From contig CM074804.1 of NCBI GenBank assembly GCA_037447605.1, positions 4,317,909-4,381,908 on the forward strand: a stretch of 64,000 nucleotides of DNA. Direction: 5' to 3'. A program made the position numbers and the translations under genes. This DNA comes from Zygnema circumcarinatum SAG 698-1b. Taxonomy: Eukaryota; Plantae; Zygnematophyceae. This document shows, piece by piece, positions 2,455 through 33,152 of the stretch. The notes under the pieces were generated by a model. The model saw nothing but the letters and a program-made list of their open reading frames with translations. It did no database searches and was not told where the DNA came from. Numbering within the stretch: position 1 is the first letter of the stretch; each line of letters begins with the position of its first letter.

Positions 2455-3340
2455 CTGTAGCCAGCCCGCGGTCCACCCTCCGGGCGGGCGGGCGGGCGGG
2501 CGGCTGCGCTGGCGGACTCGGCGGCACGCCACGCGGCGGCACTCTCACGGGATACACGACAAGATCTGCTTCCTCGTCAAAATCGTACGGTCAAGTGGAC
2601 GGTATGATACGATCCGATCGGATCCGTAGACCCTCCGCAAGCCGCCGCGGGAAGTGACCGCGGGAGGGCGGGCGGGCGACACGACACGACGGCGACGAAA
2701 TTCCAGACCGACCCGACCCGGCCCGACCCGACCCGCGCGCGCTGGCAGGCGGGCGGGCAGGCGGGCGTACGGCTTCGCGTCGGGACTTGGGACGGGCGCG
2801 TGCTCTGACACGCGGCGCCCCTTCGCGCGCCGCGCCGACTTCCGTCTGGATCTGCACGCGGGTACTGGCCGGCCGGCCGTACGGTACTCCGCCGACCCGA
2901 CCATCCCCGGGATCGGGCCACGTGGTCCCACGCCGCGCCCTGCAGACCCTGCCACGCCGCCCGCAGTCTTCGGCCGCCACGTGGCCGCCACACTCCATTC
3001 CCCGCCCCGGCCCGATCCCTCCCTCGGCACGCTTCCCTCCCCCTCCTGTCAACGTGGCGCCCGCTCCGCCCTCCGATCTCGATCTCGATCCGGCCGCGGG
3101 CGCGCGCGATGGCTCTCGGCCTCTTCGAAACGGCGGGGGGGAGGCCGTACGGTCGGGCGGGCGGGCGGCCAGGTGGCGGCCGGTCAACAGGCCCATTCGC
3201 ACGCGCGGGGCCCCAAAGATCGCGCTCTGACGCGCCCGCGCTGAAACCGCCTCCGTCCGACCCCGCCCGCCCGCCCGCCCGCCCGCCCTCCCGCGTGGCG
3301 GGCCGCAGGCATTTCCACTCGGAGGTGGCGAGCAGGCTCC
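2455..3340 (+). promoter_or_regulatory. GC/CpG-rich 5' island upstream of orphan gene A
   Basis: Dense GGGCGG, CCGTACGG and CCACGTGG motifs upstream of the CT tract and ATG 3649. Confidence 0.5.
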
Positions 3341-3344
3341 TGTG

Positions 3345-3572
3345 CTCTCCCTCCCTCCCTCGTTCCCTCCCTCCTTCCCTCCCTCCCTCCCCTCCCTCCC
3401 TCCTCCTCCCTCCTCCCTCCCTCCCTCCCTCCCTCCCTCCCTCCCTCCCTCCCTCCCTCTCCCTCCCTCCCTCCCTCCCTCCCTCCCTCCCTCCCTCCCT
3501 CCCTCCTTCCCTCCCACCCACCCACCCTCCCTCCCTACCTGCCTGCCTACCTGCCTGCCTGCCTGCCTGTCT
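3345..3572 (+). repeat. (CCCT)n microsatellite grading into (GCCT)n
   Basis: Directly visible. Confidence 0.95.
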
Positions 3573-3648
3573 GCCCTGTCGGTTTTTTGGTTTGTTTGTC
3601 CGTCTCTGAGTCTGGCCCTGTCGCCGGTCTCTGGGCGCCCTTGGGATT

Positions 3649-5130
3649 ATGAAGGGAAGCGAAGTGTCGTCGATCCGGGACAGCTTCATTTCGCGGCTGT
3701 TCCTGGACGTGTCGACATATCTGCAGGACGGCGCCGCGGGGAGGAGCGCGCTGTCGGTGCCGCCCCTCCATCATCATTCGGCATGCCGCGATGTAACCGC
3801 AATGACGGTTGCGGAGACCATAGAACGCACGGGGAGCTCCGAGGATGTGCGCAGCTGCTGCAGGCTGGAGCCCGCCTGCAACGCAGAGGCTACGCCACTG
3901 GCGGCCGGCTTCCCCACCATAGCAGGTTCGCTACTCTTCGTTTTTTCAGCTAAATTTCAGCTAGTCAGAATTGTAGGTCAGAAGTTGTAGGTTTGGGTTC
4001 TTCCACGCTGAGAAAAACCACGCACGGTTGGCTATGTCGGACTGAAACCACCCCTCCCCCTCGACCCCGCTTTTCGGTCACCGCCAACCGACCCATTTAT
4101 TTCAGGGTCTGCTTTCCTTTTACGCTGTGACATGTTTCCTATGCAACAGCAAATAATCCCGTCAAAGCTCAATTTTGGAATGGCATGGTAACAGAATGCT
4201 AAAATTTTCTAGTCTTGCTCATTTTCACGGCTACTGCATGTGTATGGTGGAACTTGCAGATGATGTGCTAGAAGTAACACCACAGCTAAAACGCACGCGT
4301 CAGCGGCAGGCAGAGTCTGTTGGGGCGTTGAATTCGGGAATCAACGTTCTTTCAATTTTTAGTAAACAGGCGGGGTTCCAAGGTCCTTTTCCCAGAGCCG
4401 ACTTAAACGCCACTTCACATGACCTTGGAAGGAGAAAATGTGGTTCAGAGCCTTACTTCCTTAGCTACCAAGATTCTTCCCTCCCCCAGGATTTTCTAAA
4501 CCTCGAACCCGATGCTTTAATAATCTCTCCAAAAAATGCCAGCGATTCCGATGACCTGCCACAGACTCCATGGACAACACACTCCCAAGATGACCTTTTC
4601 GATATTCTGGATCGCTTTCGAGGATCCCGGACATGTGCTCTCGAGGTTGAATCTAAAAGCGATGAAGTATCCGAAGTAGGTCATTCGACAGATGTTGAAG
4701 ATCAAGGAAGAAAGAGACGGTGGAGCGAGTATATTGGGCCGCATATGATGGACATGAGGTGCTTAAAGAGGGAGGCGCTCGATCCAGGGGTTGAATTGGA
4801 GTCTTCTCATAGTGAAGGGAAGTTTTGGGGTGAAGAGACGGCCCCTCAAGGCCAGTCGCAATATGTTATGAGCACGACATCTCCATTCCTCAAGGTATGA
4901 TTGAGCAATACACTCAAGAAGTCAAGGTTGTTAATGGAAGAACGCGTCATGCATGTTTGCACCAAGACAGTGTACATATAGTCGAAATATTGCTCGAATT
5001 GTTTGCATTTTGACGTTTGCCTGGTTATGATTTCTAGCTAATATAACGGTATTATTTGGTGGTACGGCTGCAGGCTCAATTGTGCTTCATCGGAGAGGAT
5101 CTGACAATAAATAGCGGACTAGTGACTTAG
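3649..5130 (+). CDS. Orphan protein A, 3 exons (3649-3925, 4260-4894, 5074-5130), paralog of gene B
   Basis: In-phase GT-AG junctions (phase 1, then phase 0). Shares SQDDLF, a KRR patch and YVMSTTSPFLK with the gene at 11607-12965. The terminal exon is less certain. Confidence 0.7.
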
Positions 5131-5690
5131 GAAGAACGTGGGAAGTAGACAATGAATCATCGCGCTTGCTTTCCTCGCAGTTATGCCTTTGATGTTTCGT
5201 GGCATCACGATTCGATAAGCAGATGGTGTATCAACTTTGAACCTGCATTCACAACCACCTGTACCATCATGATTGTAGACCAATCTTTGAATAAGGGCAA
5301 ATAAACTCGGCAGTTTAGAAGCACGCGGCAGTTTGCAGCACTGGCTCAGGGCATGTTTTTCGACTGTACCTTCATGTAATTGTGTTTTTTTGGGTACGAT
5401 ACTTACTGTAATTAACATTCACCTAATAAACTTGTTGTTCGTTGCTGTATGATACAAAACATGCTAAGTGGATTGAGCCTCGTTTTTCAAAAGCGGTTGC
5501 TTGCATTTGTGATCTTGTGCCTCAAAGTTGCGGCCAATTTCCTTTTTACCCGTCCAAAGACTTTTCTTCAAAGAAAAGCGAAGGTACGGCCTACTCTACC
5601 GTATATCACTCCGAGGGTAACACATCCGCAACTTCGCGAGGAGCCTCCATTTCATAAGTTCGCTTCGAAGCTCTGGATAAGCTCCCGGAG

Positions 5691-5785
5691 GTCCTTTGCA
5701 ACCAGTTCCTCGTGGTTCCCCATGCTGATGTTGTTCATGTACATTTCATGGCCTCGCCATCGTGAGACCAATGCCACTTCCTCTT
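5691..5785 (+). repeat. Dispersed hairpin repeat family D, copy 1
   Basis: catgtacattt-atggcctcgccatc-gtgagaccaatgccacttcc, matching copies at ~9560, 10458, 28483, 33795(-), 41245 and 44755(-). Confidence 0.85.
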
Positions 5786-6394
5786 TCAACCTGAATAAGT
5801 GGAATAATACCAATTCCTCCCTTTTTTTGTTTTAGTTTTTGCTGAATAAGTTGAAGGAGACGGCATCGAACAGATATGTTCACCTTTCCATGCGCCATCA
5901 TCGTGTACCACGGCGCCTGGTCCCATTGGTCTGTACTTTGTCCAGCTCTCACGAGCATACAGTACTTGCGACAGCGAATAATTATTCGTACAGTACGGGC
6001 AATAGTGCACGTCTCACTTAAAGACCGTCAGTAGGACTGCGAGCAACTTCCTCAATCCGATACCAAAACGAATACGGTACCCTGCGGGCCTGGCGATCCG
6101 CGTGCAGAGAAGTACTCTAACCACTTTCAGTGCCACGGACGAAAATCTTCCCTGCGATTCTTGCTCTTGCGGCGTCATGCGCTGCCGCAGCGTGGCACGC
6201 GATGTATTGTTGCCGCGCCGCACGTAAAACCGAACAGGTAGAGAAAAAAAGAAATTAAAGATTTTGACTTCTAAAAAAAAAATTCAAAACCAGTTTGATA
6301 AAGAATGGAATGAAGGATGAATTTCAATTTTTTTTTCTGAATACAATTTTTATGGAGAACCAATTGAACATTGAACAATTAATTATCGTTTGTG

Positions 6395-6470
6395 TTCAAT
6401 GTGAGTTTTCGTTGGGTCCACTGATCAACAATGAGATTTTAGCGGATCGCAAACGGTGTGGACCCGGTTG
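6395..6470 (+). repeat. Dispersed repeat family C (second copy ~34015-34095)
   Basis: gttcaatgtgagttttcgttgggtccactgatcaacaatgagatttt vs gttcaatttgacctttgcttgggtccacggatcaaaaaggagatttt. Confidence 0.6.
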
Positions 6471-7182
6471 CCCGGACAGAAATTGTTTATCGGCTTTCGC
6501 GGGAAGAGTCGTACGAAAAAAATGATTCCCGGGTTAACCAGATCCCTCAAATCGCACGGAATCCACACGCGCGACTTTTCAGTAAAACTTTTCGCTTTCT
6601 CAAGTTGAAAAGTTTCGACCTCGAGTGTCCAAAGTTTAACCCTATTCAATAAGATAGAGAATTGAGAAATTAAGTAAATTCATTTAACAATTTCTCAACC
6701 TGTTCGGTTTTACTGTATTTGGAGTGGATCATTTTTGTCGCCATCCCTCTTCTGCCTCCCCGCCTCTTTCTCCGCTACCGGTGCGGTATGAGCGCGGCTA
6801 CTTTTTTGTTTCAAGGGCAAACCCCGACTCCGGCGGGCCGGCTCTCACGGGCGCTTCAGGTCGCAACCGGCCAACCGAGGAATAAAAATGTCGGCGGCAG
6901 GCGGCCGAGCAGCTGCGGAAGCGACAAGCGCGGATCCCGGCGGATGCTGCGCGCGGGCGGCTGCGGTTGGACGCGTTGCCGACCGTACGGGCAAGCGCCG
7001 CGCCCTGTGGCGGCGGGCTGTCCCATGTGCTCGGTCTGTTACGGACCGTACGGTACGGCTCCAGAGCCGACTGCTCGTTCGTACGGGTTCTACAATAGTA
7101 GTACTGTACCCTAGTTAAAATAGTTAGAATCGAGCAGTACACTCGTTGGGTAATGCTAAGTCAAGCTAAGTAATGCTTAGTT

Positions 7183-8154
7183 GGTCCACCCTTTTTGTCT
7201 AGATACAGACCTTTTTTCTTCGGGCAGATTTTAAAATAGCCAAAAAATAATTAAAAACGGAAAGTGTTTTTTACACACCTTTTTGGAATCGATACACACC
7301 TTTTCCAGTCGGGCAGATTTTACCCCTGATTTTTTTTGTGAGGAAAAGATGTCGGCCTGCCCGAATCCGCTCGGAGCGGAAGATCCGTCCACCACGAGAT
7401 CGTTCGCGGGTGTGCGTCCTTCACACTTGCGGTGAATCTCCGCCGTCGATTCTCTTGCAGATCGCACCACGGCAGATCACCGTTGGATCTGCAGCCGGGC
7501 TCGGTCCCAGCGAATGGCACGTGCCCACGTGTCTCACCGAATCCGGCTCAAAAGTGGGTCCGTACAGGAGTCATACGGTCACAGCTTCCAGGAAAGGCGA
7601 AATACCGTCGACATTGAGAGCCTGGACCAATCACAATTGACCATGGCATAAAATAAGAACACGTGGCAAATGTTTGATTGGCGGCCAGTTGCCAATGGCG
7701 AGCCGCCGCAGGCTGGCCGGTCCAGCTCATAATTTTGCGGAGATCTCGGGCCGAGGGACGCACGCACTCGCTCTTATGAGCCGGCTTTTGGTTGGGCACG
7801 TGGGCACGTGCCATTCGCTGGGACCGAGACCGGGTGCAGATCCAACGGTGATTTGCCGTGGTGTGATCTGCGAGAGAATTGACAGCGGAGATTCACCGCA
7901 AATGTGAAGGACGTCACATCCCCGAACGATCTCGTGGCGGACGGATCTTCCGCCCCGAGCGGATTCGGGCAGGCCGATATCTTTTCTCTAAAAAAAAAAA
8001 AGATCGGGGGTAAAATCTGCCGGACGGAAAAAGGTATGTATCGATTCCAAAAACATGTGAAAAAAGCATTTTCCGTTTTAAATCCTTTTTTGTCTATATT
8101 AAAACTTGCCCGCCGTCTGTGTCTAGACAAAAAAGGTGTGAATTTAGCAGTACC
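7183..8154. mobile_element. Non-autonomous long-TIR (Mutator/foldback-like) element, copy 1
   Basis: Arms ~7183-7545 and ~7790-8154 are inverted and homologous to copies 2 and 3. Left end degraded; only a partial flank repeat ttagtt. Confidence 0.8.
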
Positions 8155-8590
8155 TTAGTTTTTGGTCGTTCTCGGAATTGAAATCCTGGAACCGTACATG
8201 CCGGTACTGCTGCCGCATGCAAGAAGTCAGAACGGTTTGCCTTTGACTACATGACAACTGACCCTCGATTCTGTTGCCCGTTGAACTCGGCCTGTGACAC
8301 TGTCCGCTGATTGGCCGTACAGTCTTAGGATTATATTTTATTGCAGACAAAATAGACAATCTTTGTCTGCTGATGGTAGCTGGCAAGTGCTGCCGTGCGC
8401 ACTCGCCAAGTGGCGCGCTCACAGCGTTTCCGCCGCCCGCTCCGCCTGCCGCGCTGGCTCCGGCTGCCCCCCTGGCCTCAACTGCCGTACGAACACGTAC
8501 GGTCGTTGGCCTTCCGGGCAAGCCTCTACGCAAATCCCTTAAACCCCATAAATAAATTTTTGGACGTCCCTTGTATTTTTAAGGGACAAA

Positions 8591-8727
8591 TAGGGGGTGT
8601 CAGACTTAAAAATTGTTCGTAAGTTTGAGACCAGAACGAGTACTTCGGTGACATCGCAATCCTGGTGCGGCGGAGTACTTACAAAACGTTTTTGTTCGTA
8701 AGATTTCGTTAAGTCTGACACCCCCTA
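8591..8727. mobile_element. MITE family B, copy 1
   Basis: Perfect 19-bp TIR TAGGGGGTGTCAGACTTAA ... TTAAGTCTGACACCCCCTA. Confidence 0.75.
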
Positions 8728-9559
8728 ATAATGACATACTGTACAAGAAATAGACGATCACTGTTACGGAAGTCCAGCGACGGCTGAAGCCTCCGTAAGA
8801 CTTACTGACGCATTCTTTGTCTCCCTTTTCATTGGAAGGCATTGTTGAGTGCAAGACGAGGATGTGGCATTGATCTCTGCAAGCAGTTTGATTGTGTGAA
8901 GGCTCGTCGTGAGGTCCACCAGAGGTAGAGCGGGGTAGTGTGGGATGATAAGTTGCTGATAGTCAGAGTTGATATTAAGTTATTGGGTGTGCTCTTAGTT
9001 TGAACAGAAAAGTCATATAAGTATTGTATTACAGGACATTGGTTTGGTATAATTATTGTGTTCTAGTTTTGTACTTTGGTGCTTCACTTTTATGTAGGCG
9101 GTTAATTGAAGCTAGTGCTTGCAGTCCTGGGATGAGCATGTCCAAGTATATTTAAGTTGTACGATTCTTTTTGATATATGAAGGGATTTCATATATATTT
9201 TCTTTCCTGTACTTTTATCATGTAATTCTTTCATCTTTTGCTTTAGTGTAAAATGGGCACATGCATGAAAGCGATTGAAATAATTAGAGGAAATGTGGGG
9301 GCAAGGCTAGGGACACCATCCTGGCCGGCCGGCGTTCAGTCTCTTGTCGGTCATTCAGATCCCTTCCGCCGTCGGTAAATCTTCCGTGACTTTGAGAGAG
9401 AGAGAGAGAGAAGAGGGCCTCCGGGGTTTCGTGCACACCTCTGAACTCCGGCCGCATTCCAACCTGGCAACCCTATGTTCCCATAAACTATGTACAGTAC
9501 CACTAAGTCGCGGCTCTTCTAGTGCCGTGTTGTTGAGCCTGGAAGTAGATTTCCGTTTC

Positions 9560-9662
9560 GAGGCTTTCTCTTTGTCCTTATGTCCATTGTGACCGCTTCT
9601 TCTGGTTCCCTATGTCGATTTTATCCATGTACATTTGATGGCCTTGCCATCGTGAGTTCAAT
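9560..9662 (+). repeat. Family D copy 2
   Basis: ttatccatgtacatttgatggccttgccatcgtgag; very close to the reverse complement of 33795-33905. Confidence 0.85.
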
Positions 9663-9864
9663 CAAACATCTTTTCACCACTAACTATTGTACACTATCAG
9701 TTGGCCTGCGCGCACGGCGTCGAGACGGATGGTCGACAGCCACGTGCCGACGAGCGATTGGATAAGACATGTTTTCTCGTGAACGATTTGCAACACGCGG
9801 TGAGGTGAGGTCAGGTCGGGTCGTTCGGAAGCGTTTTGGTTTCATAACGGGGGCCGCGCTTCCG

Positions 9865-10282
9865 GGGAGGGAGCGAGGGCGGGAGGGAGCGAGGGAGGGA
9901 GGGAGCGAGGGCAGGAGGGAGAGAGAGTGGGAGGGAGAGAGAGTGGGAGGGAGCGAGGGCGGGAGGGAGCCAGGGAGGGTGTAAGCCAGGGAGAGAGGGT
10001 GCCAGGGAGGGAGCGAGGGAGGGAGGGAGCGAGAGAGGGAAGGAACGAGGGCGGGAGGGTGGGAGCGAAGGAGGGAGGAAGCGAGGGCGGGAGGGAGCNN
10101 NNNNNNNNGGAGGGAGGGAGGGAGCGAGGGAGGGAGGGAGGGAGGGAGCGAGGGCGGGAGGGAGCGAGGGTGGGAGGGAGCGAGGGAGGGAGGGAGCGAG
10201 GGCAGGAGGGAGCGTGGTAGCGAGGGCGGGAGGGAGCGAGGGCAGGAGGGAGCGCGGGAGCGAGGGCGGGAGGGAGAGAGGG
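9865..10282 (+). repeat. Purine-rich (GGGAGCGA/GGGA)n degenerate satellite with a 10-N gap at 10099-10108
   Basis: Directly visible. Confidence 0.95.
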
Positions 10283-10457
10283 AGAGGTCAGTTGCGCCGT
10301 CGAGTGCGAACCGCGTTTCCGGGCACCAACGACCGCGGCAGCCGAAGGAGCATATTCTTTGCATTTCTATACTCTATATATGCATACGTTTCATATCGGT
10401 GACCGTCGCGGCTGCTGCGAATGCCGTGTTGTTGAGTCTAGAAGTAGATTTCCGTTT

Positions 10458-10560
10458 ATAGGCTTTTTCTTTTGCCTTAGTTCCTTTCCGACAAATCCTC
10501 GTGGTTCTCATGTTGATTTCATCCATGCCTCGCCGTCGTGAGATCAATGCCATTTCCGAT
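10458..10560 (+). repeat. Family D copy 3 (internal deletion)
   Basis: cctcgtggttctcatgttgatttcatccatg-cctcgccgtcgtgagatcaatgccatttcc. Confidence 0.75.
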
Positions 10561-11606
10561 TCATTTCAATATCCTATACATGGCACAAGAGGTCAACATC
10601 TCAGAAAAAATGGACTCAAGCAAATAGGCCAGCTTTGCACTAGAGTTTGTTCCCATATCGACATGATTAGGGCTTGGGGTATACAACCATTGTACACCAT
10701 TGTTTTATCACCTGCACCATGTCGCGCTTGCACTTTTTTTTAACTATGTTCCACGCGACCTATAAAGTTCTATCGGGCTCAGGTGAAGAATAAGCGCTAA
10801 TCATGTCAGATCCTGTAAATTATTTCGCAGGACTCCATGGTGCTCAACTATACACACCTCATATAGAGGCCTTCAGGGTTGGAGTAACCCTTAGCCCCTA
10901 AAGCGCTCTCTCTGGACACGCACTTGGAGCTACAGCATTTTACTCCAAACCTCCCTAAAAAACCTGCTGTTGACAACGCTATTCAGTCAAAGAGCTACCA
11001 ACAATACAACAGATTGCTTATGCCTATAGCAGACAAGGCCACATTTGTCTGACCATATCTTGTTGAAAACATGGAGGTTAGCTACTCAAGCTCTGCTGCA
11101 AGATACAAAACGGTCTTCTCAACCTTTTCTTCCTACGAAACCTTGTATTTTTCTTCGAGTACAGTCGTCTTGAGCCAACTGCTAGCGCAAAGAACATTGT
11201 TGTGTCAAGTGGCGATTGCTGTAGCAATTTGACCATGAAGGTTGATGTGCTATCGGTTAAAAATGACAAGGATTAATTCACCGATTCATGTGTCCCCACT
11301 AAAGGTCAAAGTATTCGTAACCATTTGATGTCGATAGCCCACTCTTGTCCTTGCCCTTCTTGGATTTGTTACAGCATCTGCTCCTTTAGTTTCCACCATC
11401 CACTGCAAGGATGAAGACTAACTGACAAACCTGACACAACGATGTTATCAACGCGCAGTGGAAGCATTGGGAGAAGTGCGGGGGGAGCCGGACGGGAAGT
11501 GGGGGTGAGAGCGAGAGGGGAGGGAGAACGTGAGTGAAGAGCGATGGGGGGAAAGGCGAGAGAGATGGCTCTGACAGAGAGATGAAGAGAGAGGAAGACG
11601 GGAATC

Positions 11607-12965
11607 TCATGAGAATGGCACGAGGCCGAGTCCGGAAGAGAATTCAGACCCCGCCAAGAGCTGTTGCAGTTGTGACTGCATCCCCAACACCAATAGGCCA
11701 ACATTAGATTACAATATTGGCAATGAATTGAAACCTGAAAAATGTCCAATACGGTAAAAGACCAAACGCAGACTTCTGCAGAACAACTTAAAAAAATAAT
11801 GTCGAAACACCAAGGATCGCAGAAACAGTTATTACCATCCTCACCTTGAAAAAGGGCGATCCCGTGCTCATAACATAAGGTGAAGGAACTTCAGTATGTA
11901 CAAATTGCAGATTATTTACACGACTTCCGTTAATTGCAAGATCGCCTCCGAAATGATTTGAAGAAGATTTCCATCCTATTTTCAACTTCTCCAAATCCGT
12001 TCCATCATCGGAAAACTTATCACTTTCGCGACGCCGTTTGCATCCTCTTCCTTCCTTGGAAAAAGCTCCGGCCGCTTCAAACCCATCCACGACGGAAAAG
12101 AGGTCTTCTTGCGATCGGGAGGAGAAAGGAGGGAGAGGAGGAAGGGGAGACCCCATGGGGGGGAGCTCCTCATCCGAAGTAAGCGAAGGCGAGTCTCTTC
12201 CAGAAGAAGTACACCGGAAAGTAGCAGCCATCTCCTCCGAGCCCATTCCCTGGGGGCGTCTGAAGTACTTTTTCAGGATTTCCAACCATTCCAAAGCAAC
12301 AAAGTTGTCGATTCCCGGCACAATTTTTTCGTCCGTTTCATCTGAAAATTTAGAGGGAAAGTAGGTATTTGAAGACTGGAAATGTTTTTGAGACGAGAAA
12401 ATGTTTCCTCCTTCAAGTATTGTTGATGAGAGGTTTGAGGAGGATGGAGCAGAAGCAGTCGGAGAAGCTCCCTGAGGGAAACGAGAAGTCGCTTCAAAGG
12501 AGAGGCCAAGGCTGCCTTTGCTGGGTGGCGACTCCTCGAGATCACACAATAAGGCCGAATGATCTGCACACAACGTAGTACAGTCAATGATGCTACTTCG
12601 TCGGATTCTCGGAATTCCTTTTAACCTTGTGATTAATTCTCACGTGCTGTAAGAGAAATAGCACGCAAAGAAGTCCGCTCACCTTCTGCGTTTAGATAAG
12701 GTCCGCTTAAGGTCTCGTCTAAAAGTATCACGGGCCGGTCTCGTGCGCCTCCATAAAGGGCGCCATGGCTGCTTGTGGACCGGTCGATGAAAGTGGCATC
12801 CTTGATGGGTTCCGTGGGAAGGCCGGAGGCGAGGCAGGAGATAGGAGGGAGAGCTCTCGCCATGGCGAGAGAGCCTACGGAGTCGAGGTCGCTTTTCCAA
12901 AGGGAAGCGCGGTTAGCAAGGAGCTCTAAATAAACGGAGTAGTCGGGAAGCGGCGTCCGCAGCAT
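11607..12965 (-). CDS. Orphan protein B, 3 exons (12965-12683, 12563-11845, 11675-11607), paralog of gene A
   Basis: Start context GCCACCATG; in-phase GT-AG junctions (phase 1, then phase 0); motifs SQEDLF, KRRR and YVMSTGSPFFK. An alternative acceptor near 11735 is possible. Confidence 0.7.
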
Positions 12966-12974
12966 GGTGGCTGC

Positions 12975-13070
12975 CTCCCTCCCTCTCCCTCTCCCTCTCC
13001 CTCTCCCTCTCCCTCTCNNNNNNNNNNCTCCCTCTCCCTCTCCCTCTCCCTCTCCCTCTCCCTCCCTCTC
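12975..13070 (+). repeat. (CCCTCT)n with a 10-N gap at 13018-13027, immediately 5' of the gene B ATG
   Basis: Directly visible. Confidence 0.95.
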
Positions 13071-14100
13071 TCGCCGCCGCCCGCTGCGTGTGCGCCCACC
13101 CTCGGACCGCTCCGCCCCGTCCCCCTTTAGCCTCGCCCGCCCCGCCTGGGCCGACCGCCTCCTTCGCCGGCCGCCGTACATTGATCGTACAGCCGACAGC
13201 CGGCCGCGGGGGCACGTGGGCCCTCGCCTCCTGCGGCCGCACGTGTGGGCGCGGCCCTCCGGACGCGCGCCTGCCCTGGGGCCCAGCTGGCCCAGGGGGG
13301 CCGTACGGCCCCCCGCACCGCCCGCGCGATCGGCTGCCGACACGTGCCACGTCACGACGCGGTCATCATGCGGCGGGCCGCGGTCAGATCCGTACGGGCG
13401 GAAAATCCGGCGGGGGCTGCCCGGGAATGCGGGGGCCAATGGGGGCGAGCGGAGGAGGCGCCGCGCCGACGTGGATCGGGCAGGAACGGCTCTTGCGCCG
13501 CCGGGCGGGCCGGGACCGTACGGCGGCGGCGGGCGCTTTGGCTGAGGTGGGCGTCCAATATCGTGATGTCACGCGCGCGTCCACCCTGGCGCGTGCGCCC
13601 ATCGCATCGCGCTGCGAATGGCGGTTAGGGTTTCGCGCATTGACGCGCGGCCGGCGGGCAATGGAGGCGTGCCACGTGGAGGATTTGAGCACCACGGTCA
13701 ACGAGGAATGGCGGGCCTGAGCAGGAAACCAGACGACCGAGGGCGGCGGTCAACCTCCCCCGCGCAGCGGACGGGCGGCGACAGTGGTGGGGCGGCGTGC
13801 AAACCTTTTACCTTCTAGTTTCCTGACGTCACCTCGAGGAGGTCAGCCCCGAGGGCGGCACGGCGGTTTGTCGCCAACGTTTCGGGGGGCGGGCGCGGGC
13901 GGATGAATGCGGTCGGCCGGCGGCGGAATGCGGCTGCGAATCGCATCCCGGCGGGGGGGCTCCGTTCCTTCAACGGCCGCCCCACTCTTGCCCGCGCCTG
14001 CAGTTCAAGCGCGGCCCGCGGCCGTACAGTACGGCGGCTGTCCGGTGCGCCAAGAGCCGCCGTCGCCCGAATGGCGACGATCTCCGTCGCGAGATGCGGT
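13070..14100 (-). promoter_or_regulatory. GC/CpG-rich 5' island of gene B
   Basis: Multiple CCGTACGG and CACGTG; telo-box ttagggttt near 13625. Confidence 0.5.
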
Positions 14101-22803: not shown

Positions 22804-24259
22804 TCAAGCACCGCAGGAAAGCTGACCAGTCACAGCTTGCTGCCGCGCTTTCTCACACCACTGCCCGAACGACTTTTGAAAGTTGGGCCAATCAGATGTC
22901 GACCATGAGTACTCCTCCAACCAACTTGCAAAAATGAGCTCTTGGTCGGTTGCAGAAAGAGGCTCAATGGCCTTTTGTAAAGCATCTTCAGTTTCCTGGA
23001 ACAGCAAAACAAACCAAGAGCAAATCTTACAGATCAGACGACGAGGTTTACGCTACAGCTTCAAAGCCAGACCCAGATTCCACCCTCTATAGCTCTATCC
23101 CTAAATCCTGACGCAAAAATTCTTGAGCGAAAGATTCGCAAGAAATTGATAGGTCCACTGAGGCAAACAGTATGCAACAAAAGCAAATCCGAAAAAAAAC
23201 GCAGACGAAGAGAACGATTAACATGCATTCAACATAGCGGCCTGATCCGATTTGACTGGCCAAAGCAAAGCGAAAACAAAGTCACGCAAAAAGAACCGCA
23301 TATCCTTCCCAACTCCTCAGCTCCTTCAAAACTCCTTTTCCCCAACTGAATACCTGCTTCTCCCAACTGCTGAAAATGGGTCCATCGCCTCCATGCGTCG
23401 CCCGACAGAACAGCGGCAGCCACAGCAGCAGCAGACGGAACTGAACTTCTTTAGTGACAAACACAACCTCGTTTCCAATGGCCCGGCTCAATATGGCAGA
23501 CAATCGTACAAGGCTGCGCTGCACCCTTGGACTCGCAGCCAGAGCCATGGATGCCAGCTGATTCGCCTTGCTCCACTGCCAGCAAACCTCCTCAATTCCC
23601 TCACACTCTCCCATCTTCTCCACCAGCCACAGAAGCTCAAGGGCAAGCTTCTCCGCCTTGCTACCCTCACTGCTCCCGAAGTCACTCAAACCCGTCCAAG
23701 AATACCGCTCAATCAGCTGTCCAAGGCGCGTGGATCCCTGCTCCCTCCGCAGAGCCGTTTCCAAAAGCTGCAAAGTCCGCCTGAAAGCTCGTGCTAGAGC
23801 AGCGCGGTTAACTGCAAGCAAAGGAACTTCCAGGGAGGCGTTATCAGCCAGCACCCTCTCTGCTACAGCCCTTGCAAATGCATACTTCGGAGAGGAAGTC
23901 GGCAGGTCTGTGACAAGGCTTAACGCGTGTGCGAGAGCTCTGCCGATAGCTCCGGCAGGCTGCTGCTTGGATTGGCTGCGAAGGTTCCTGTTCCTGCTGT
24001 CTCTTGCAGGAAGGAGGACGCTTCCCGACAACCCTGAAACAATTGTGTATGGAATGACAAGAGGGAGCACTGCAAGGCCAAGGAGTTGCTCTCCAAGAGG
24101 GCGCCATAGCACAATAGCTTCGGATATGAGCTTCAGGAAGGAGGAGAGGAGCAGTCGCCATAGCACGGAAGAGAAGGTCGTCTGCCTGTCAAGAGATGGA
24201 GTTTCAGCATGGCGGAAGCTGTACGATGCGGAGCGTACGGGAGCGTCTCCTGCCGGCAT
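22804..24259 (-). CDS. Plant-specific protein related to the At3g05675-type C-terminal domain, 2 exons (24259-23354, 22995-22804)
   Basis: Motifs AEKLALELLWL, LLLLWLPLFCRA, QELIFASWL and SDWPNFQKSFGQWC (recalled family); in-phase GT-AG intron. Confidence 0.75.
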
Positions 24260-25204
24260 GGTGCGGGGGAGAGAGGGAGGCGAGGAGGGAGGAGAGAGAG
24301 AGAGGAATTGGCGCCCCGGCCTCGTCGCGGGTACCCACTTCGCTTCCGCCGGCCATGGCGGTGCAGGCGAGCGGGCGGGCGGGCAGGAGGCCGCGCCACG
24401 CAGGGACGGAGGAAGCATCCACTACGTGATCCGCAAAATGTGGATCCTACCGTCGACGTCCTAGTGGACTCCAGATCTGAACACCCGGTGCGATTGGACC
24501 GTCCGATGTCACGATCCGACGGGAATTCATCGAAAGGGCTGAATGTCCATCGTTCATTGAACTCGCAGGTGCGAAGCGATTGGTCGGGTGGTCCAGAGTG
24601 GATCCACGGAGCAGGTAGAATCTGTCCCGTCAAATCCGTTCGCCGCCCCCCTCATTGGACGATTTGGGCGGTCGGCGGGCGAGCGCGCGGGGGCGGTCCA
24701 CGCCCGACCGTACGACTGTACGAACCTGGTCGGCAAGTGCGGGGGGCTGCGCGGCTACGCTGGACGGAACTGCTGCGACAGCGACAGAGGGAGGACAGTG
24801 CCAGCAGCGCCTGCCCGTGCGAGGGCTCCCACAAGGCCCACTTCTCGAGAGCCATGCATATACACGTAGATGCAGCTGAGAATTTTTTAATGCGTAAAGC
24901 ATGGTGACGATATATGTGATAAGTAAAGTTGTGATGCCTTTGCACCATCTCTTGTTTACAGTCAAATTTTTATTACTGAAAACTCTTCGTCGAGAGACAA
25001 AGAATTGGCTATTACATATCCTTTTTACGAGTACAGCCCCCCAGAAGCAAGCTTTTACCATAGTTCCCGATTATATAACCTTTCCCAGCCTACTGTTGCT
25101 TTCTCCTGACATGCCACATCCTTCTCTTTCTCCTGACATCCCGTTGGAACCGCCTCATACGTCCAAGTGCACAAGCACAGAAGCGCTGATGGAAGCGCAG
25201 CAAA

Positions 25205-30229: not shown

Positions 30230-30800
30230 TTACTAAATTACTAATTCATTTGGCCATGGGCAAAGTCTGACTCAGAGTTTTAACGTTTTTCCCGTACGCT
30301 CTATAGGGACTTTCTGAGTTTTATCTCGACGATGCCTGGGGGGTGCCCCTGCCGCAGCATTCGATGGAGCCTTACAGCCGTACATTCGTACCTATCCGTA
30401 CGGACGAGAACGAGCACCCAAACGCAAACGCAAATGCGTTGGGAGGCGGGGAGGCGGGGAGGTGAGGGGAGGGGAGAGGGCTGTGGGGCTGCGGCTGGCG
30501 CTCCCCGGGTGGCTTGCATTCCGCGGCGAGCGAGGCAGGAAGCATACACGGTCAAACATTCTAGATTCAGCGGTCAGAGACAGGGATGTCGTTTTTCAGT
30601 GACATTAGACATCGCTCTTTGGTCTCAGTTCCTTCTATTCCCATAATTCTTTCGGCTTTGTTCCAATAATGTGCTCCAATTTGTGCCATCTAAAATGAAA
30701 TTCTGCCTCACACCCTTGAATCTTCTTGGAGCAGCATCGCCCCCCTGCCTACTTGGAACGAGCGCACGCATTCCTTCATGCTACGGGAATTTTCGCAGGC

Positions 30801-33152
30801 ATGATTCTCTGTAGCCGCATTTGCCGCCTGCAGAAGGCTACAAACCTAGGCCTTGGAAGTGGAATTCAAATGCTGGCCTCGTCGCTTAACCTGCATCTCC
30901 CCCCTCCTGATTCACAGATGTCTCCTGCTTTCGCCATGACTCTCCCGCAATCTATTTCCAGCCAGCCTTTCCCTGTTTCCTCAACTCCTGCAACAACATG
31001 GAGACCTCCTTCCACCACCAAACCAGCAACTCCTTCCTTCCCCTTTCTGCCAATCACTGCAATCCATTCTCTACCTCACAACGTCATGACTTCTCAACAG
31101 TTCGCTTCTGATGATGTTGCTTCATCTTCATCTTCCAATTATCTTATTCCTTCCAAACTTATCACCCGATCGCGCCCTTTGTTTACATCTCTCCACCTCT
31201 CATCGCCTAAGGGATCCTCCTTCCAACCAGGTTCTGCAAAAGTACCCCAGGCCGCTGCTTTAGGAGGTCCACCTTCGCCTACAGTACAGGATTCTACAGC
31301 AGCAGCAACAGTAGGAGTTGCAAAGCCTAAAAGAGTCAAAGGAAAGAAAGCTGCAAAGGTTTTTGCTGTAGAAACAGAGCCCAATGATTCCTCGAGGGAG
31401 ACTTCGGCTGCAGCTGCAGCTCTGGAAGAGAAGCCGAAACGAAGCCGAAGAAAAAAGGAGGCAGCAAGTGCTGAGGCAGATTCAAAATCCGCACTTTTTG
31501 AAGGTGAAAGTGAAAGTGTGGGCTTTACTGCATACAAGGCTGCAAGGGAAGGAGAATTGGCTGCAGCTCGTCAAGGAGAGCCCTTCGGCAGTATACATCT
31601 CATTGTAGGGCCGATGTTTGCTGGCAAAACCACGGAACTACTGAGGCGAGCCGCATGGGAACAAGCACAGGGCAGGTAGGAGCAAGACACAAGATTTGAA
31701 CTTCTGAGTACCTAAGTGAGTGATCGTCATGGACATGTAGAATGGCCGTTCAAAGTGATTGTCTGATGTTTTATTCTCGTTAGATTTTACAATGGACTGC
31801 TATCAGCTTGGTTGAGTGCTAAACAGCAGGATAGTTAGAGATGAAACTACAAGGTTTATTTATGTTGAAGTGGGAAACTCGACAAAATTGAATTGGAGAA
31901 ATTATATATGGTCTCCTCGACAATGGTGGGTTTGCTCGTCTACTGCGTCCTAATTCTTTTGCCTAGATCACATAATTTGGGTTCCACGATACCGCGACCT
32001 AACGCCTTACTTCCGACGCCTTTCTATTTTATAACGTCTACTAGTATCTCTCTACATTGCCCAGCAGTTAAATCTCTGGTAAAGCTTTAATGCTATGCTC
32101 TACTCCAAGTCACATTCGCCACTCCTTTTGCCGTTAGCTGTGAACTTCTTGACTTGTGCGAGCATACTTCCTATCTTGTTCTGTAGTTTAACAAACCAAA
32201 TTGTGCTTTTTTCTTGCCTACAGGAAGGTTGCTGTGGTGAAATCCAGCATAGATACGAGATATGACAAAGTGGCTGTTGTTTCACATGACGGGCATCGCA
32301 TGCCCTGCACAGCTGTTGACAGCATGTCCGCATTCGAATCATCACTTGGGTCAAAAAGCCTGCAGGAGGTAAGAGTAGCCCTCTCAATCCCATCTCGTGC
32401 GGCAGAGCTGTCATTCCTTGTTCATGGCTACATGTACATTTGCTTTCTTAGATAGTTCTCTAATTTTGTACGCTGGAGCACGAGTTCAGCCTATTTCTGG
32501 AGCTGTCAGAAGATTTCTCAACCCATAATCTCTCAAAAAGTCAACCTGCTTGAATCACTCACCAGCAATTTTGAATGCTTGTTGCAATGGCAGGTAGATG
32601 TCATTGCTGTGGATGAAGCCCAGTTCATTCGAGGCCTCGCTCAGTGGTGTCTGACGGCTGCTGATGAATACAAGAAGACTATAGTCCTTGCGGGTCTTGA
32701 CGGTGATTTTGAAAGGTACACGTATTGCATCCCGCAACTTCTAGGCCACGTGTATGACCGTCCGTAGCATAGGTTTTAGGGTAACCTTGTTCTTTTTTTG
32801 GCACTAACCTCACTCCTTCGCTTGACCCCCCCCTTGCAGGAAGAAATTCGGTGATCTTGTGGATATGGTACCCATGGTGGACACCGTCACAAAGCTGAGT
32901 GCCAGGTGTCACATTGAGGGATGTGAGCGCCGTGCACACTTTACTTTTCGGAAGTCAAGCGAGACAGCAAAGGAAGTGGTGGGAGGGGCTGAACTTTATA
33001 TGCCTGTTTGTAGGGAGCATTACCGGGATAGGAGGAGGACTATGGCTGCTCTACAGGCCATGGAGGCTCAATTTGAAGAAGCTATGAAGACAAGGCAGTT
33101 CGTTTCATTAGATAACGATGTGGAAGAAAGCCATGCAAAGATGTCCATATGA
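30801..33152 (+). CDS. TK1: Thymidine kinase (TK1 family), 4 exons, long N-terminal extension
   Basis: IVGPMFAGKTTELLRR, KSSIDTRY, VIAVDEAQF, LAGLDGDFERKKFG, KLSARC, EVVGGAELYMPVCREHY; ATG 30801 just after an acceptor-like tttcgcag. Confidence 0.95.

Follow-up and report, generated by a model that had tools for sequence, protein, structure and literature searches.

Two groups of described plant proteins come closest to the genes considered here. XRI1 (X-ray induced 1), found in land plants, has no Pfam domain and is largely disordered; its basic cluster is of the KRRR type, and its C-terminal part contains a conserved motif with PF, of the type PF..K...G..TL.DIN (also PF..K...TL). The MS5/TDM1/SDI (POLLENLESS3-like) proteins carry an N-terminal [ST]PYV..K.AQL segment with a cyclin-dependent kinase (CDK) site, and this segment continues into a tetratricopeptide repeat (TPR) domain. 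Here, we analyze two genes, A on the forward strand and B on the reverse strand, that lie tail to tail in a stretch of 64,000 nucleotides (hereafter, the window) from the streptophyte alga Zygnema circumcarinatum SAG 698-1b (assembly GCA_037447605.1, contig CM074804.1, positions 4,317,909 to 4,381,908). A and B are paralogs from an old duplication, and we think it fairly probable that their proteins are disordered adaptors or regulators acting through short linear motifs.

Both proteins are similar to XRI1 in size, predicted disorder, basic cluster, and C-terminal PF motif. The [ST]PYV..K.AQL segment of the MS5/TDM1/SDI proteins likewise resembles SPYVMST.SPF.K-SQL. However, the frames of A and B stop 18 (A) or 22 (B) residues past this motif, and the transcript of gene A ends at about 5451. 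Membership in the MS5/TDM1/SDI group is not supported, as Pfam finds no TPR and exon 3 ends in a stop that the gene A transcript confirms.

Conserved blocks in two diverged genes

The initial annotation proposed a common three-exon layout for A and B, and this was correct for both. In each gene, a phase-1 intron splits a GAT (Asp) codon after 92 (A) or 94 (B) codons, and a phase-0 intron follows immediately behind S.YVMST.SPF.K, with exon 3 opening on [AS]QL. The sequence TGCAG is present at all four modeled acceptors. The products are 322 amino acids for gene A (3649-5130, +, three exons) and 356 amino acids for gene B (12965-11607, -, three exons).

Exon by exon, the resemblance between the two proteins is very uneven. 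Exon 2 of A aligned to exon 2 of B with a Smith-Waterman score of 79, compared to 34.1 +/- 5.4 for shuffled sequences, and none of 2000 shuffles reached that score (z ~8); BLASTP returned a composition-corrected E-value of 0.001. Exon 3 was marginal (20 versus 13.8 +/- 2.9 for shuffles, 97/2000), and exon 1 was at chance (27 versus 24.6 +/- 4.5, 544/2000). Given the exon 1 score, the DxSxYL motif that had been listed among the conserved blocks is by itself no evidence of homology; that exon 1 is homologous is suggested by its equal length, its phase, and the split codon. Within exon 2, the similarity falls in discrete blocks rather than evenly: P..[TS][TS].SQ.DLF...D.F, G.KRR.S, and S.YVMST.SPF.K. 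All of the motifs quoted in the initial annotation are present, each once per gene in a six-frame translation of the window, which contains no further members of the family. One of them, DMRCLK/DLEKLK, is a weak match that needs gaps. Overall, what the initial annotation observed is confirmed.

Little of this resemblance is left in the DNA. The remaining nucleotide match covers 35 nt around YVMST...K|GT, at 83% identity, plus another 14 nt where the basic cluster is encoded, and in the C-terminal half different codons are used at 19 of the 33 conserved residues for which there is a choice of codon. A DNA match this limited, with codons differing where residues are kept, shows that the duplication is old rather than recent and that selection has acted on the peptide blocks, in line with the age first proposed. 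Judged from their sequences, A and B are real, protein-coding paralogs that arose by an old duplication in a streptophyte alga.

Transcripts of genes A and B

We placed contigs from four runs (X1, X2, X4, and X7), one per study, on gene A. In 4/4 runs, contigs of 982-1281 nt connect 3925 with 4260 and 4894 with 5074, showing zero mismatches and GT..AG borders, so both introns are spliced as the initial annotation predicted. Upstream, the contigs reach 3578 at the furthest; their downstream ends fall at 5416-5451 (ends seen in three runs), with the end of the 3' untranslated region (UTR) lying about 20 nt past an AATAAA at 5425-5430. The interior of intron 2 had zero contig coverage in the four runs, so the contigs derive from RNA and not from genomic contamination. 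Over intron 1 (3926-4259), unspliced contigs at lower depth in X1 and X2 suggest some retention; a transcript that kept this intron would run into a stop at 3988-3990 and encode a shortened protein of 113 residues. The start of gene A is the first in-frame ATG following a stop. At the other end of the gene, where splicing of the terminal exon into a known domain had been considered, exon 3 ends at a stop after 18 codons. We conclude that the gene A model is verified in full by spliced contigs from four independent studies.

For gene B, we sampled 31-mers from 11400-12965 and found that 0.77-0.79 of them were present in each of seven small data sets, which belong to four studies. Those 31-mers that fall entirely within the three modeled exons amount to 1188/1536, or 0.773, the share expected if both introns are absent, and the runs therefore fit the exons of gene B without its two introns. 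A share of this kind cannot fix the boundaries, as the 0.81 predicted for an acceptor at 11735 differs by no more than the sampling error. Gene B is likely expressed and spliced, with indirect support from the share of 31-mers in the runs. We infer its start codon from the GCCACCATG context and by analogy with gene A, because the frame upstream of this ATG is open through an assembly gap at 13019-13028.

The modeled acceptor of gene B intron 2 has a context similar to that of the verified acceptor of gene A (TATTGGTG...TGCAG). An open frame of 126 codons at 11369-11749 (-), with many Cys, Trp, and Pro residues, overlaps gene B in its intron 2, exon 3, and 3' UTR, and would join exon 2 in frame via an alternative acceptor at 11736/11735. 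Were this acceptor the one in use, the 3' end of gene B would be mis-modeled, and a Cys/Trp-rich tail of about 120 amino acids encoded by that frame would replace the 22-residue exon 3. The alternative acceptor has the better pyrimidine tract and looks stronger, its frame stays open for all 126 codons, and the observed word share does not separate 0.773 from 0.81. Nevertheless, the acceptor at 11677/11676 mirrors the verified acceptor sequence of gene A, leaves an intron of similar length (169 versus 179 nt), yields [AS]QL...SGL as in A, and has the TGCAG common to all four modeled acceptors. We therefore consider the longer tail distinctly unlikely.

Searches for relatives

Exons 1 and 2 of A and B matched no family in Pfam-A at E <= 10. 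A word-index search of 5.8 billion proteins with exon 2 of A, exon 2 of B, and their alignment returned nothing at E <= 10, with length windows that would have admitted full-length proteins of the A/B type. A profile built from the conserved C-terminal halves was compared exhaustively with 1.84 billion representatives in HMMER and found no genuine relative; passing a search of this size takes roughly 40 bits or more. The sole HMMER match (P0001), a bacterial protein of 1161 amino acids, is made of seven identical tandem copies. Its score adds up seven weak matches, and we discarded it as an artifact. The ESM Atlas feature search gave no usable match, and the ESM recognition scores of A and B were low. 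Among PDB sequences, there were matches at E > 1 only. In the JGI metagenomes, back-translated patterns yielded 174 pattern matches, none of which was confirmed. The seven metagenomic loci matching a degenerate YVMST.SPF.K DNA pattern all lay in broken frames, and we treated them as chance matches. The alga's own proteins were absent from the search results, and its proteome evidently lies outside the libraries searched.

The absence of relatives is solid for close and moderately distant ones but not for kin that share motifs only, because kin whose divergence from A and B equals that between the two genes could fall under the threshold. On this sequence evidence, A and B form an undescribed family of two members without detectable relatives, a result that is real but modest and lineage-specific. 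The initial annotation had recognized no domain or known family, and the Pfam, word-index, HMMER, ESM Atlas, PDB, and metagenome scans, all without a relative, agree with it.

The same threshold bears on whether A and B might be extremely diverged members of a described family of disordered plant proteins, such as XRI1-like proteins, lying under the reach of these searches. A need for about 40 bits in 1.84 billion proteins would indeed miss relatives that share motifs only, and the exon 2/3 junction of A (SPFLK-AQLCFIGEDLTIN) resembles the C-terminal motif of XRI1. Compared by eye, however, this motif fits A in part and B not at all, its TL-type part being missing in gene B. Neither profile nor single-sequence searches brought up XRI1 or any other named protein, and no similarity between XRI1 and A or B was detected in profile and word-index searches. 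Membership in the XRI1 group is not supported, and we rate it as highly unlikely.

We also considered whether A and B could be fast-evolving, lineage-specific genes with little or no function, their shared blocks being leftovers of incomplete divergence. Such genes could well have two members only, no orthologues in any searched database, and an exon 1 whose similarity is already at chance level, as seen here. By contrast, the conserved blocks have kept their residues although most of their synonymous positions have changed, the similarity is concentrated in those blocks rather than spread evenly, both genes have intact frames and splice sites throughout, and expression of gene A is seen in four independent studies. 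We regard little or no function as unlikely.

Predicted disorder and motif readings

The exon 2 products are acidic, with a net charge of -11 (A) and -7 (B). Ser makes up 12-17% of their residues and Pro 6-8%, and about 63% of all residues are disorder-promoting. AlphaFold models of exon 2, built from a two-sequence alignment, had low confidence throughout, with a mean predicted local distance difference test (pLDDT) of 44 for A and 46 for B. The sole predicted element in A is a helix at residues 109-120, which corresponds to the conserved QDDLFDILDRFR block with the DLF motif; the sole one in B is a B-specific helix at residues 87-99. A and B are thus predicted to be largely disordered, without a folded domain, as the initial annotation had supposed. 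Four-basic-residue runs of the pat4 type occur at aligned positions, RKRR in A and KRRR in B.

Conservation is limited to three or four such blocks, as in disordered proteins whose activity resides in short linear motifs, and the blocks can be read, from sequence and general knowledge of such motifs, as parts of a nuclear adaptor under phosphorylation control. The acidic-hydrophobic SQ[DE]DLF.[IV][LV]D.F block, predicted to be helical in A, could be a helical partner-docking or activation-type motif, and the serine of SQ[DE]D in front of it would fit the consensus of CK2 (S..[DE]) and of PIKK kinases (SQ). RKRR/KRRR matches a classical monopartite nuclear localization signal (NLS), which is putative here. 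The invariant RR.S behind the basic run has the form of a basophilic-kinase consensus and could gate nuclear import. At the C-terminal end, S.YVMST.SPF.K-[AS]QL, which spans the exon 2/3 junction, contains a conserved, putatively phosphorylated Ser-Pro site. A function of A and B as nuclear regulators is plausible on these motifs.

The DLF segment also matches the acidic F-x-x-[LV] pattern of Atg8-interacting motifs. Thus, A and B could conceivably be cytoplasmic adaptors, for instance cargo receptors of selective autophagy, in which [DE]DLF..[LV] would be an Atg8-interacting motif and the basic cluster would be no NLS. The pattern [DE][DE].F..[LV] plus an upstream serine fits both proteins, and disorder is frequent among autophagy receptors. 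However, this pattern is very common by chance, and the segment is helical in the AlphaFold model of A, whereas Atg8-interacting motifs bind as extended strands. A role in autophagy seems to us very unlikely, and a nuclear adaptor remains the reading we prefer.

Feature coordinates and surrounding sequence

Coordinates of the features of genes A and B and of the repeat arrays and gaps near them are given in Table 1.

Table 1. Exons, introns, motifs, and neighboring sequence features of genes A and B, numbered by position in the window.
Feature	Position	Strand	Description
Gene A exon 1, coding part	3649-3925	+	92 codons + 1 base; from translation; 5' UTR to at least 3578
Gene A intron 1	3926-4259	+	334 nt, GT..AG, phase 1; Asp codon split G|AT
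Gene A exon 2	4260-4894	+	211 full codons following the split Asp
Gene A exon 2 motif SQDDLFDILDRF	4583-4618	+	From sequence
Gene A exon 2 motif GRKRRW	4706-4723	+	From sequence
Gene A exon 2 motif SQYVMSTTSPFLK	4856-4894	+	From sequence
Gene A intron 2	4895-5073	+	179 nt, GT..AG, phase 0; right behind the SPFLK lysine codon
Gene A exon 3	5074-5451	+	18 codons (AQL...SGLVT), coding to 5130; TAG stop 5128-5130; then 3' UTR
Gene B exon 1, coding part	12965-12683	-	94 codons + 1 base; predicted ATG 12965-12963 within GCCACCATG context
Gene B motif DYSVYL	12944-12927	-	In exon 1
Gene B intron 1	12682-12564	-	119 nt, GT..AG, phase 1; Asp codon split G|AT; from sequence
Gene B exon 2	12563-11845	-	239 full codons
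Gene B exon 2 motif SQEDLFSVVDGF	12114-12079	-	From sequence
Gene B exon 2 motif GCKRRR	12045-12028	-	From sequence
Gene B exon 2 motif SPYVMSTGSPFFK	11883-11845	-	From sequence
Gene B intron 2	11844-11676	-	169 nt, GT..AG, phase 0; right behind the SPFFK lysine codon; predicted acceptor
Gene B exon 3, coding part	11675-11607	-	22 codons (SQL...SGLGLVPFS) + TGA stop
Tandem array (GGGAGGGAGCGAGGGA)n	9865-10284	none	420 bp, intergenic, part of neither gene; contains gap 10099-10108
Second N gap	13019-13028		Within (CTCCCT)n repeats; distance to the gene B ATG downstream, 54 nt

The two genes are separated by an assembly gap at 10099-10108, flanked by GGGAGGGAGCGAGGGA units on both sides, about 1.5 kb downstream of the gene B stop (11607) and about 4.6 kb past the end of the gene A transcript (~5451). 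Although the gap sits between A and B, it crosses no reading frame of either gene. The convergent adjacency of A and B therefore depends on a scaffold join with an estimated gap length. The initial annotation held that the pair arose by an inverted duplication; the paralogs do lie on opposite strands, but their tail-to-tail geometry spans this gap.

CT-rich/GA-rich hexamer microsatellites lie directly upstream of both ATGs, (CCCTCC)n at 3340-3575 for gene A and (CTCCCT)n at 12979-13072 for gene B, on opposite sense strands relative to their genes. Both assembly gaps fall inside such arrays, (GGGAGGGAGCGAGGGA)n and (CTCCCT)n. An intergenic repeat that measures about 70-100 bp and has ...CATGGCCTCGCCATCGTGAGA.CAATGCC... 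as its core occurs in three copies at 5700-5790, 9590-9660, and 10490-10555; all three are on the + strand and so were not part of the inverted duplication. Also between the two genes, at 7183-8154, is a ~1-kb foldback element whose inverted arms are very long. Elsewhere in the window, Pfam detected, at the level of exons, the start of a thymidine kinase domain at 30726-31679 (+; 24.4 bits, above the curated cutoff of 20.6) and a BTB/POZ-ankyrin-like segment at 23282-24418 (-; 24.4 bits, just under the cutoff of 27).

Discussion

Several points weigh against reading A and B as paralogs that act through conserved motifs. The family has two members only, and its apparent conservation may in part be incomplete divergence. 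The exons were searched separately, so a signal across the exon 2/3 junction could have escaped. For gene B, we infer the transcript structure, and the exon 3 acceptor especially, from sequence rather than from direct observation. The low pLDDT values come from an alignment of two sequences and are thus weak evidence for disorder. Finally, the patterns read as NLS, kinase sites, and motifs resembling LC3-interacting regions or transactivation domains are all loose and would be common by chance.

A bolder, and on balance rather doubtful, proposal is that A and B are founders of a lineage-specific family of nuclear adaptors, gated by phosphorylation, among the algae related to land plants. The invariant S.YVMST.SPF.K-[AS]QL block would then be a docking motif not described before, and its conserved partner could be a kinase, a phosphatase, or the substrate receptor of a ubiquitin ligase.

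The pair opens no long-standing question, and its main present value lies in annotation, as it provides two verified or near-verified gene models and a set of motifs for newly sequenced streptophyte algae. Z. circumcarinatum is a member of the algal lineage closest to land plants. Provided that the motif blocks have a function, A and B would offer a small and tractable case of disordered proteins in which a few peptide motifs preserve function although the remaining sequence has diverged past recognition.

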